Shown one piece after another: positions 48,900 to 50,970 of a stretch of 64,000 nucleotides of DNA. Source of the DNA: Oikopleura dioica (lineage: Eukaryota; Animalia; Chordata); assembly GCA_907165135.1 (NCBI GenBank), contig OU015569.1:3038001-3102000 (forward strand), given 5' to 3'. The translations under genes were made by a program, and so were the position numbers. The stretch's first letter is position 1. Every line of letters begins with the position of its first letter. Under the pieces are notes generated by a model. That model worked only from the letters and a program-made list of their open reading frames with translations, searched no databases and was not told the DNA's origin.

Positions 48900-50970
48900 T
48901 ACTAGTTTTCACGAGACCCCTCTGTTTTGCCCAAAACATACCCCCAGGATATGCGCTGGAATTTTTACAATTACGATCAGGCTGCACTTCCACTTGTTGA
49001 TTAGTAATTTATTTATTACCTCATCACTCCACTCGTCCATTCGCGGATTAAAATAGCTGAACTGGATGGACTCGTAGGCCTTGTTGTCTTCATAAGTCCG
49101 CTCGTGAACTTTTCTTGGCACCGTTTTTACCCAGGAGTTATTCTCGTCTGGGTCAGTGACATTTTCTTCTTTGAAATTTGGCCACTTGGCAAATCTGAAC
49201 TTCTCAAAAATGTTCAATGGTCGGACGTGACTGTAGTTCGAAACATCTTGGAGTGTCGAAAGATCTTCGAAGACTTGCTCCTCCTCTTGAACTTGATCGT
49301 TTTCAGCCGTTTTAAGGCCTTTGGAAGAGTTGCCGATTTCCATGCTGCTTTGGCGTTTGGATGGTCCAGCAATGTGGTTAGAGCACCCGGCTTGCATCCA
49401 CGGCTCGAGTGTAACTGGCGTTTGTCGGATCATACCGGTCTTTGAGGCCGAAATACCAGAACGGGAGGGTTGATAATAGCGACTATTGACAAGAGCCTTC
49501 TGTTTCTCCATTCTCTCGTAACGCGCAAGTCGTTCTCTGTGCTCCCTTGCAAGTGGAATATCATCATCTTCGTCGAAAAAGTTCATTCGACGATCTTGAG
49601 TGTTGCCGATCACGGAAAGCTCTGGATCCGGAAGAGCAAATTCCGATGCGCCGTGTTTTTGCCTGGAGACCGATTTCTGCGTTGATTGCTTGTGAATTTT
49701 TTTCCGGAGTTTTTGGTAGAAATTTTCTGTAAGCAGCCCTTCGTGCTTCCCCTGTCAGAATGGGCTGCTCTTTGGGCTTTGCGCGGACGGCAGGAGGGAT
49801 GGAAAAGACGGTTTCGGGAACTGAGCTACTGTAATCCATTTCTGAAGCTTCAACTGGGGCTTTGGCCTTGTCATTTTGCCGTGTCAGGTTGAATTCTGTT
49901 TCTGGTACGCGACTAGTGTATTCCAGATTAGACGGGCCAGCCATGTCGTGCTCACGGAGGTATTCCTCTGCGGTCATTAGCTTCTCATTCGGATCAATAT
50001 CTACCCCGTCATCGTCATCGGTTTCATCTTCGAAAAATGAGTCCGGTGCTAATAGATCCTCTTCAAATCGATCGCTATTAAATCCTTCTTCATTCTCGGA
50101 ATCGTCACTTTCGAACAGCTTCACTTCAGGCTCTTTCTTCTTCTTTTCGACGAAATATTCCTCGATCTTTGGCGGCTCTCCCACGGCGAGGTCCTCCTTC
50201 GGATGATTCGGGTTGTAGATATATTTTTTCAGGTCCAAAAAGTACTCCATTTTGACAAGGGGCACATCTTTCACTCGCAGTGTCTTTTCTGCGAAAAGAT
50301 CGTCGGTTCTTTCGCCTTGGTAGAGCAAGTATTCGTAATCTTCCTCGGTCTCGACGGAGAATTCCTACAGATTGATTCAGCACAAGAGTCAGCAAAAAGA
50401 GATAGAAGGTACCTTGAAGGCGATGAATTGAGGAAGCTGAGGATTAGACGGCGGGAAAGGGCAGTAAAAGAGCAGGGGTTTCCCGGTTATTTGGAATTCT
50501 GTGCTGTAGACTCCAAAAACGATCCCTAACTCGATCGGCTCTGTGTAATTGAAGGAGGATTTGTCCGAGTGATCAGACGAAATCACTTTGCGCCAGTCAG
50601 CTTCGGCATTTAGCCTGACCTTCGACGAATACTTCGATTCATCCTTTTTCAGTGGTTTACAAGACTATGCGTTTCGGCTGTTTTTGCGCTGTAAGCCACT
50701 TTCCTGGATAGACACGACGATTTTCTTGAGAACTTTGTCATGAGAAATGACGATTTTGGCATGTTTCCGCGAGATGGACTTGTCTGCCTTGATAACGAGC
50801 GCGGTCGTGTTCTCACCGAAGTCGATCTGAATTTTATTTGATGAAAAAGATGAAAATAGAGAATCCACTTGATTTCTTACCGCTTGCTTGGCCGGGCGAG
50901 TGATCTGGTAAGTGTGGTCGAAGCGCATCGGAACACGGAGATTTTTTGTCTTGTGCTCAAGCCAAAACAT
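48900..50970 (-). CDS. NBN: Divergent nibrin/NBS1-like protein (FHA-BRCT, acidic linker, C-terminal Mre11/ATM-motif-like region)
   Basis: FHA: [76 protein letters not shown]. C-terminus: NIFEKFRFAKWP, NNSWV, QFSYFNP. All are collinear with human NBN motifs. The 3' end is approximate. Confidence 0.75.

Follow-up and report, generated by a model that had tools for sequence, protein, structure and literature searches.

A putative, highly divergent NBS1 orthologue in the larvacean Oikopleura dioica

Animal life without classical end joining (c-NHEJ) has its model in Oikopleura dioica, a species whose genome is scrambled to an extreme degree and which relies on microhomology-mediated end joining (MMEJ). 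Both MMEJ and homologous recombination depend on resection, which the MRN complex initiates, and the presence and form of the third MRN subunit in this animal therefore matter. Does O. dioica encode such a protein, and if so, what does it look like? Our literature search, which had Deng et al. 2018 and Denoeud et al. 2010 outside its scope, returned no statement on NBS1 or ATM in Oikopleura. The question is raised by a gene, OKI2018_I69.XSR.g14100, located in the window (the 64,000-nucleotide stretch of DNA analysed here), whose product of ~668 residues we consider fairly likely to be a compact and very divergent orthologue of NBS1 (nibrin/Xrs2).

The gene is real and its product is already present in the public annotation, albeit with no functional name and thus not as NBN. 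The model proposed in the initial annotation requires three corrections. That model spanned 48900-50970; we keep its start, an ATG at 50970, but not its end, since a fifth exon carries the gene on to 48648. In the corrected model five minus-strand exons cover 50970-48648, as follows.

Exon 1, 50881-50970, minus strand: residues 1-30, from the ATG at 50970; predicted first three FHA strands.
Exon 2, 50704-50826, minus strand: residues 31-71; predicted FHA core with D-K-S-I-S-R-K-H-A.
Intron 2, 50644-50703, minus strand: 60 nt, non-canonical GA..AG, with an in-frame stop inside.
Exon 3, 50413-50643, minus strand: residues 72-148; predicted remainder of the FHA and start of a BRCT1-like stretch.
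Intron 3, 50365-50412, minus strand: 48 nt, GT-AG.
Exon 4, 49020-50364, minus strand: residues 149-597 of the 668-residue model; BRCT1-like stretch (to 50125), acidic and Ser-rich linker, conserved C-terminal short motifs.
Intron 4, 48864-49019, minus strand: 156 nt, GT-AG.
Exon 5, 48648-48863, minus strand: Lys-rich stretch followed by a conserved tail; stop codon at 48650-48648.

Metatranscriptome contig X1 shows that the gene is transcribed and spliced. Record 3 covers the 3' half of exon 3 and contains the intron 3 joint, whilst record 2 runs unbroken from 49018 to 50130 in exon 4 and contains the intron 4 joint. RNA thus bears out the downstream part of the spliced model and leaves exons 1 and 2 and the GA..AG intron uncovered by transcript contigs. 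The species-labelled raw RNA-seq runs X7-X9 yielded no usable reads at ≥90% likeness, so these upstream parts are without RNA support; the runs probably derive from a different cryptic species, which would explain their lack of usable reads. Exon 1, which has a GT donor at 50880, encodes a conserved Y-Q-I-T-R-P-A-K and is 87-90% identical to its counterparts in L001 and L002, with NYQISRPAK retained in the distant relative L005. The position first proposed for the GA..AG intron holds, being supported indirectly: in a sibling lineage (L001, L002 and L004) an uninterrupted ORF crosses the junction site, and an identical junction is present in the public annotation (P0001).

The case for NBS1 is built on the FHA domain, which starts at residue 1, ends at around residue 128 (coordinate 50473, within exon 3) and is, by sequence profile and predicted structure, closest to that of nibrin and Xrs2. 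A profile built from O. dioica orthologues only (A2), run with hmmsearch against 177,635 distinct PDB sequences, gave human nibrin (8bah_C) as its first match (E=0.0024), with an alignment spanning the FHA core and continuing into the first BRCT1 strand. Profile A7, which also includes two more distant relatives, matched nibrin at E=1.1e-6 (31.8 bits), with Saccharomyces cerevisiae Xrs2 (9ee7) second at E=0.0095; no chain of RNF8, CHFR, MDC1, PNKP, APTX, APLF, CHK2, Rad53, TIFA or Ki-67 was matched by A7 at E≤10. Across the PDB, nibrin and Xrs2 were the only eukaryotic FHA proteins matched by the orthologue profiles, in keeping with the NBN-type FHA claimed at the outset, and no other FHA family ranked ahead of nibrin. 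In these alignments exon 2 lies opposite nibrin DQSISRNHA and exon 3 gives 'FGVFGSKFRIEYEPLVACS'. The O. dioica peptides quoted in the initial annotation are all present in the spliced minus-strand translation, and two of their human counterparts, one of them ITFGVFGSKFRIEYEPL, can be read in the nibrin chain (8bah_C) of the HMMER alignment.

Pfam FHA scores are modest and below threshold for single exons, the whole protein and the orthologues (12-18 bits; E=0.009 for exon 2). A phmmer search of the PDB with residues 1-235 did not find nibrin, and when 5.8 billion proteins and 1.8 billion representatives were searched directly, all matches were relatives from the O. dioica complex.

Only the FHA is folded in our AF2 model (pLDDT 56-74 for residues 1-128), the input alignment of which excluded the orthologue rows for the BRCT region, where MAFFT had misplaced exon-sized fragments. 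Foldseek comparison of this model with the PDB ranked Xrs2 first and Schizosaccharomyces pombe Nbs1 entries second, third and fifth, at a modest E of ~2e-3. VIA-align superimposed model residues 1-129 on chain residues 1-117 with Z=10.3 for Nbs1 and 9.9 for Xrs2, a narrow margin given 9.2 for other FHA domains and a bacterial FHA that ties at 10.3. In AFDB Swiss-Prot, fungal, vertebrate and plant nibrins align from their own residue 1 with 18-22% identity, whereas the remaining FHA proteins reach 11-15%. In the ESM Atlas, residues 1-235 have nibrin clusters from fungi, chordates and plants as their structural neighbours (TM 0.51-0.53 over 155-162 aligned residues). The domain is 67-69% identical between lineages compared with ~30% for the linker, indicating that the gene is under constraint.

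Retention of the phosphothreonine-binding residues, as first claimed, is borne out in part. S49-R50-x-H52 aligns with human S42-R43-x-H45, whereas the key arginine depends on the alignment: the residue opposite human R28 is E35 in the ungapped HMMER alignment, whilst the AF2 strand positions (beta3 at residues 20-24), like the alignment in the initial annotation, would place R25 there and predict a longer loop, with pLDDT in this region only ~63-74.

Beyond the FHA, the resemblance to NBS1 is one of layout: an N-terminal FHA, a long disordered linker and conserved short motifs towards the C-terminus. The ~100 moderately conserved residues that follow the FHA are collinear with BRCT1 and keep a P-x-V-x-x-x-Y-F-x-x-L-K ... 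I-E-x-[FY] pattern across lineages, but the BRCT originally read here must be regarded as putative only. No BRCT match was obtained from Pfam, the PDB profile search, phmmer (residues 118-228) or an Atlas search (residues 118-232), and the AF2 model, built without the BRCT-region orthologue rows, leaves residues 129-232 unfolded (pLDDT <50). The sole structural hint of BRCT1 is the weak ESM Atlas result described above, in which the aligned length extends past the FHA. A second BRCT is absent from the product, as proposed from the start: neither the protein nor any orthologue matches Pfam NIBRIN_BRCT_II, and the residues after ~228 are acidic, of low complexity and ~30% identical between lineages. 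The linker, of ~300 acidic, Ser-rich and fast-evolving residues, nevertheless contains an island that is nearly invariant amid this ~30% identity, with a degenerate repeat 29 residues downstream.

Island, 49879-49926, minus strand: 16 residues, L-E-Y-T-S-R-V-P-E-T-E-F-N-L-T-R; near-invariant between the Okinawa lineage and L001, L002 and P0002-4.

Two further elements, both conserved across lineages, lie towards the C-terminus.

C-terminal motif cluster, 49044-49214, minus strand: residues 533-589, with L-N-I-F, P-D-E-N-N-x-W and F-x-[YF]-F-N-P.
Conserved tail, 48651-48692, minus strand: F-x-S-Q-x-D-[LM]-x-x-F-x-x-R-K, in exon 5.

The cluster was originally taken to contain an Mre11-binding motif resembling KNFKKFKK and an ATM-recruiting tail. 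It has no profile match to nibrin in the PDB or to Pfam Nbs1_C, to which neither the protein nor any orthologue matches. The resemblance of NIFEKFRF to NFKKFKK is confined to the Okinawa lineage, siblings having NIFTSGNF. At ~7 residues, however, the MRE11-interaction motif belongs to the short linear motifs that profiles routinely miss, and it may still be present. As for the ATM-type tail, the existence of exon 5 means that the motifs first described as C-terminal sit 80-135 residues before the real C-terminus. Two candidates can be picked out by eye: F-S-Y-F-N-P at residues 584-589, which siblings have as L-F-F-N-P, and S-Q-x-D-L-x-x-F-x-x-R-K in the true tail. The lineages conserve both, and neither is supported by Pfam or PDB profiles, a profile of the tail included.

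This part of the protein gives some weight to the best of the alternatives, namely that the gene derives from NBS1, with a nibrin-type FHA, and is no longer an MRN subunit, being instead a paralogue or a re-purposed phospho-adaptor in which the MRE11-interaction domain has been lost and LEYSSSVPETEFNLTR and the F-SQ-DL-F tail serve other partners. We think this unlikely. An MRE11-interaction motif is not recognisable by profile, the NFKKFKK-like string differs between lineages and the protein contains strongly conserved islands for which we know of no NBS1 counterpart. However, a motif this short is easily overlooked, the architecture and length fit NBS1, and our forward searches found only the orthologues of this gene, with one gene per contig or lineage. 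As identity here rests on forward searches from this gene, O. dioica may conceivably have a second and better NBS1 candidate.

More doubtful is the proposal that the protein belongs to another, or a lineage-specific, FHA family and that its likeness to nibrin reflects generic FHA resemblance and chance. The modest scores obtained throughout, from Pfam and Foldseek alike, are what this would predict, the structural rankings place other FHA domains close behind and the NBS1-defining features outside the FHA remain putative. Against this, the two PDB-wide profile matches with E<0.01 are the two NBS1-family members that the PDB contains as full N-terminal chains, while the dozens of further eukaryotic FHA proteins with solved structures give no score, the profile drawn from O. 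dioica alone already ranks nibrin first, and the FHA occupies the very N-terminus from residue 1, a position shared by all nibrins. NBS1 orthology accordingly remains the reading that we favour.

A separate matter is the reading frame of exon 4, which shifts at a run of adenines where the window is 2 nt shorter than the transcript contig.

A7 homopolymer, 49697-49703, minus strand: A9 in the transcript contig (TT added behind 49696).

The sequence in the +2 frame, QSTQK...LPDxExSxI, is also kept in L001 and L002. The public annotation crosses the frameshift with a 58-nt non-canonical intron, and P0001 accordingly has no residues between NAEI and ELSVIGN; this intron is an artefact bridging a homopolymer error. 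A GT-AG intron at 49670-49622 was also considered as a repair of the frame and rejected, the transcript contig being continuous there and carrying the additional 2 nt in the A-run instead. That the sequenced individual carries a frameshifted, non-functional allele, truncated after ~414 residues if A7 is real (the assembled frame meets a stop at 49564), is very improbable: the difference falls in a homopolymer, a classic site of long-read assembly error, the frame is intact in the transcript, whose source population is near-identical with 4 mismatches over 1113 nt, and conserved across lineages, and the gene lies in an X-specific region, such that a male would have no second copy.

What might an NBS1 of this form do? 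The protein probably serves O. dioica as a reduced third subunit of the MRE11-RAD50 complex, with binding to MRE11 wholly inferred. By analogy with NBS1 elsewhere, the FHA would recognise partners that CK2 or CDK has phosphorylated, CtIP/Ctp1 for example. The disordered linker would provide a tether, and the C-terminal short motifs would wrap around MRE11 and reach RAD50 or a PIKK. The whole would then be a regulatory MRN subunit for resection feeding homologous recombination and MMEJ. In mammals the FHA-BRCT module reads the gamma-H2AX/MDC1 platform. Other checkpoint components besides H2AX are also reportedly missing from O. dioica. H2AX itself is absent (PMC3156773) and, with the gamma-H2AX/MDC1 platform gone, loss of BRCT2 would fit. 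A more specific and speculative scheme, which we put forward as a possibility on the unlikely side, is that a stripped-down NBS1 runs O. dioica MRE11-RAD50 having lost both BRCT2 and the MRE11 clamp in its canonical NFKKFKK form, and using two strongly conserved, lineage-specific modules instead, the LEYSSSVPETEFNLTR island and the F-SQ-DL-F-RK tail. Were this so, rewiring would have affected the regulatory interface of MRN, and a divergent MRE11 may have been part of the change. A named candidate opens up the questions of whether the protein binds MRE11, which motifs are required and whether an FHA-CtIP link persists without H2AX. It also suggests that homology-based inventories of repair genes can miss fast-evolving adaptors in the Oikopleura lineage.

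Like human nibrin (NBN/NBS1; 8bah_C, O60934) and the other vertebrate nibrins, the protein has its FHA at residue 1, and with nibrin it shares S-I-S-R-x-H-A, D-x-S-K-Y and F-G-V-[FY]-x-S-[EK]-F, a similar length (668 against 754 residues), disorder in the middle and a set of conserved short motifs close to the C-terminus. The order of these motifs, [N-x-F-x-K-F] ... W ... F-x-Y-(F)-N-P, resembles by eye that of K683-NFKKFKK-690, W722 and DLFRY/F744 in human NBN (PMC12446458). The O. dioica protein differs from nibrin in its lack of BRCT2, its putative BRCT1, the absence of a Pfam Nbs1_C or NIBRIN_BRCT_II signal, either a beta3-beta4 loop insertion of ~10 residues or a missing GR arginine, an NFKKFKK that is not conserved between lineages and ~80 extra C-terminal residues from the additional exon.

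A precedent for such reduction is Caenorhabditis elegans NBS-1 (C09H10.10), which is without both BRCTs and escaped homology searches for years (Girard et al., 10.1101/214015), showing that BRCT2 is not universal in the NBS1 family. Both proteins are compact, keep the FHA, have reduced or lost the BRCTs and belong to fast-evolving genomes. The nematode protein, however, is about half the size, whereas that of O. dioica retains a long linker; its MRE11-interaction domain is clearly recognisable, which is not so in O. dioica; and it has been validated by genetics and yeast two-hybrid analysis, whilst the role of the O. dioica protein is a predicted one. Finally, S. cerevisiae Xrs2 (9ee7) and S. 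pombe Nbs1 (3hue, 3i0m) possess a rigid FHA-BRCT1-BRCT2 module that the AF2 model of the O. dioica protein lacks, yet these two provide the best structural matches to its modelled FHA, and Xrs2 K-N-D-K-S-I-S-R-Q-H matches the 10-residue O. dioica counterpart.

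The minus-strand FHA gene of this window is best read as a compact, divergent orthologue of NBS1, and we consider this reading probable. According to the window sequence and transcript contigs, the gene has five exons and spans 50970-48648 on the minus strand:

50970-50881, minus strand: exon 1, followed by a 54-nt GT-AG intron
50826-50704, minus strand: exon 2, followed by a 60-nt GA..AG intron (50703-50644)
50643-50413, minus strand: exon 3, followed by a 48-nt GT-AG intron (50412-50365)
50364-49020, minus strand: exon 4, followed by a 156-nt GT-AG intron (49019-48864)
48863-48648, minus strand: exon 5, the last

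The contigs come from X1, a poly-A-selected marine metatranscriptome; they confirm the last two introns (50412-50365 and 49019-48864) and cover 49018-50130 without interruption. The initial annotation placed the end of the gene at 48900, a position within the last intron, and missed exon 5. No RNA contig spans 50562-50970, GA-AG intron included, and the open frame is kept by many alternative G..AG intron choices. The GA-AG junction originally proposed is probably the right one, because the same region in the sibling O. dioica lineage (contigs L001, L002 and L004) is a single uninterrupted ORF across it and because the public annotation has an identical junction. That annotation, P0001 ('Oidioi.mRNA.OKI2018_I69.XSR.g14100.t1', Oikopleura dioica, 651 aa), is unnamed and has no Pfam domain precomputed; its match to the first 222 residues of exon 4 covers 100% of them.

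Among the 1.8 and 5.8 billion proteins searched, the only matches came from the O. dioica species complex, for which four contigs (L001-L004) were recovered. Two further relatives, more distant and presumably from other appendicularians, turned up in a metagenome scan and could seed a deeper family alignment:

L005, 357-833: AT-rich JGI marine metagenome contig, relative of the FHA exons; 35% identity over the FHA, with 'NYQISRPAK' kept in the first exon
L006, 1765-1932: AT-rich JGI marine metagenome contig, relative of the FHA exons; 49% identity over 52 residues

Identity of the Okinawa protein (the product of the window's gene) to the sibling lineage declines along the sequence, from 67-69% over residues 1-128 to 41-43% over residues 129-228; the linker is ~30% identical and the C-terminal parts 31-35%. 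Their alignment nevertheless contains the following sharply conserved islands:

LEY[ST]SxVPETEFNLTR
QSTQK...LPDxExSxI
L[ND]IF
PDENNxW
FxxFN[PL]
FxSQxD[LM]xxFxxRK, terminal

One 16-residue island, LEYTSRVPETEFNLTR (49879-49926, minus strand), is near-invariant between these deeply diverged lineages, and a degenerate repeat of it, MDYSSSVPETVF, is found at ~49804-49839 (minus strand) in the Okinawa protein. We know of no NBS1 counterpart for this island, which is a candidate partner-binding short motif.

The reading as NBS1 depends chiefly on the FHA domain. Generic Pfam FHA gives sub-threshold scores only (12-18 bits). More informative was hmmsearch of ortholog profiles over the whole PDB (177,635 distinct chain sequences), a set that includes most characterised FHA families. 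With a profile of O. dioica orthologues only, human nibrin (8bah_C, E=0.0024) is the single match with E<0.1, in an alignment extending through FGVFGSKFRIEYEPLVACS. Once L005 and L006 are added, nibrin reaches E=1.1e-6 and yeast Xrs2 (9ee7) E=0.0095; this profile finds no other eukaryotic FHA protein among the PDB sequences, the remaining matches being bacterial FHA fragments (E>0.1) and one unrelated chain (Epf 4es8, E=1.6). Of the phosphothreonine-binding residues claimed earlier, Ser-Arg-x-His is kept; the arginine corresponds to R25 in the initial alignment and with the AF2 strand positions, whereas the ungapped HMMER alignment has E35 in its place.

A BRCT had also been proposed to follow the FHA. 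Residues 129-228 lie collinear with BRCT1, and their PxVxxxYFxxLK...IExx[FY] pattern is retained between lineages, but no BRCT is recognised there by Pfam, PDB profile, phmmer, Atlas or AF2. BRCT2 is absent, as initially suggested: past residue ~228 the sequence becomes acidic and of low complexity.

The MRE11-binding motif of human NBS1 is K683-NFKKFKK-690 (PMC12446458), to which 'NIFEKFRFAK' of the Okinawa protein had been matched. The sibling lineage has 'NIFTSGNF' instead, the segment EKFRFAKWP appears to be an insertion specific to the Okinawa lineage, and searches for the motif gave no Nbs1_C match in Pfam and no nibrin match with profiles. It is possible, if rather unlikely, that the gene encodes an NBS1-derived adaptor whose tie to MRE11 has been lost. 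The supposed ATM-recruiting tail, 'FSYFNP', has a conserved counterpart in siblings ('LFFNP') but sits 80 residues before the true protein end, and Pro residues break up what in human NBS1 is an unbroken helix. The true C-terminus, 'SQxDLxxFxxRK', is by eye a second candidate; profile searches lend statistical support to neither.

In an AlphaFold run with FHA ortholog rows, residues 1-128 fold with pLDDT 56-74, and Foldseek against PDB ranks Xrs2 first and S. pombe Nbs1 second, third and fifth. VIA-align places residue 1 on residue 1 for Nbs1 (Z=10.3) and Xrs2 (Z=9.9); a bacterial FHA ties at Z=10.3 and other FHA domains reach <=9.2, a structural margin that by itself would not suffice for the assignment. 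In AFDB Swiss-Prot, fungal, vertebrate and plant nibrins match from the first residue with the top identities in the list, and the structural clusters closest to the ESM Atlas model are nibrins. On the sequence and structural evidence together, with most weight on the sequence profiles, the FHA is of nibrin type, as first proposed. That this is an unrelated FHA protein is improbable.

An X1 transcript contig has two bases more than the window in the A-run at 49697-49703, so that the window, taken literally, changes frame there. The +2 frame reads '...QSTQK...LPDPELSVIGN...', and its conservation in the other O. dioica lineage makes it the true reading frame; the simplest account of the A7 in the window is an assembly error in a homopolymer. 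A frameshifted allele in the sequenced individual is very improbable: the A7 as it stands leads to a stop at 49564, but the transcript contig carries the conserved frame intact. P0001 removes a 58-nt 'GA..AG intron' at 49620-49677 (minus strand), an artefact ruled out by the transcript contig, which is unspliced there. This intron compensates for the 2-nt shortfall and leaves P0001 ~17 residues short of the corrected 668-residue model; non-canonical introns in gene models of the OKI2018_I69 assembly can therefore hide assembly frameshifts.

The next gene (region 48411-48552, also on the minus strand) begins ~100 nt past the stop of exon 5. Positions 48411-48550 are matched by a transcript contig with a 15-nt end unmatched to the window; the reverse complement of this end, ATTTCGATTGTCTAA, resembles the 3' portion of the spliced leader of O. 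dioica, which implies that 48549-48548 is an SL trans-splice acceptor and that the two genes form an operon-like pair. The ORF from 48538 (MGVSRLVPS..., minus strand) is GnT-I/MGAT1-like, and L001, L002 and L003 have this neighbour in the same place, so microsynteny is conserved.

The initial statement that NBN, ATM, CHEK2 and RAD52 are listed as undetected in O. dioica found no confirmation in the literature searched, which makes no mention of NBS1 status in this species. That literature does document that O. dioica has lost c-NHEJ (PMC6635534, PMC12426944) and that H2AX is absent (PMC3156773). As an NBS1 orthologue, the gene would belong to a known kind of system rather than a new one, and offers the field a directly testable candidate. 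A close precedent is C. elegans NBS-1, which is likewise compact, is without BRCTs and was overlooked for years (10.1101/214015).
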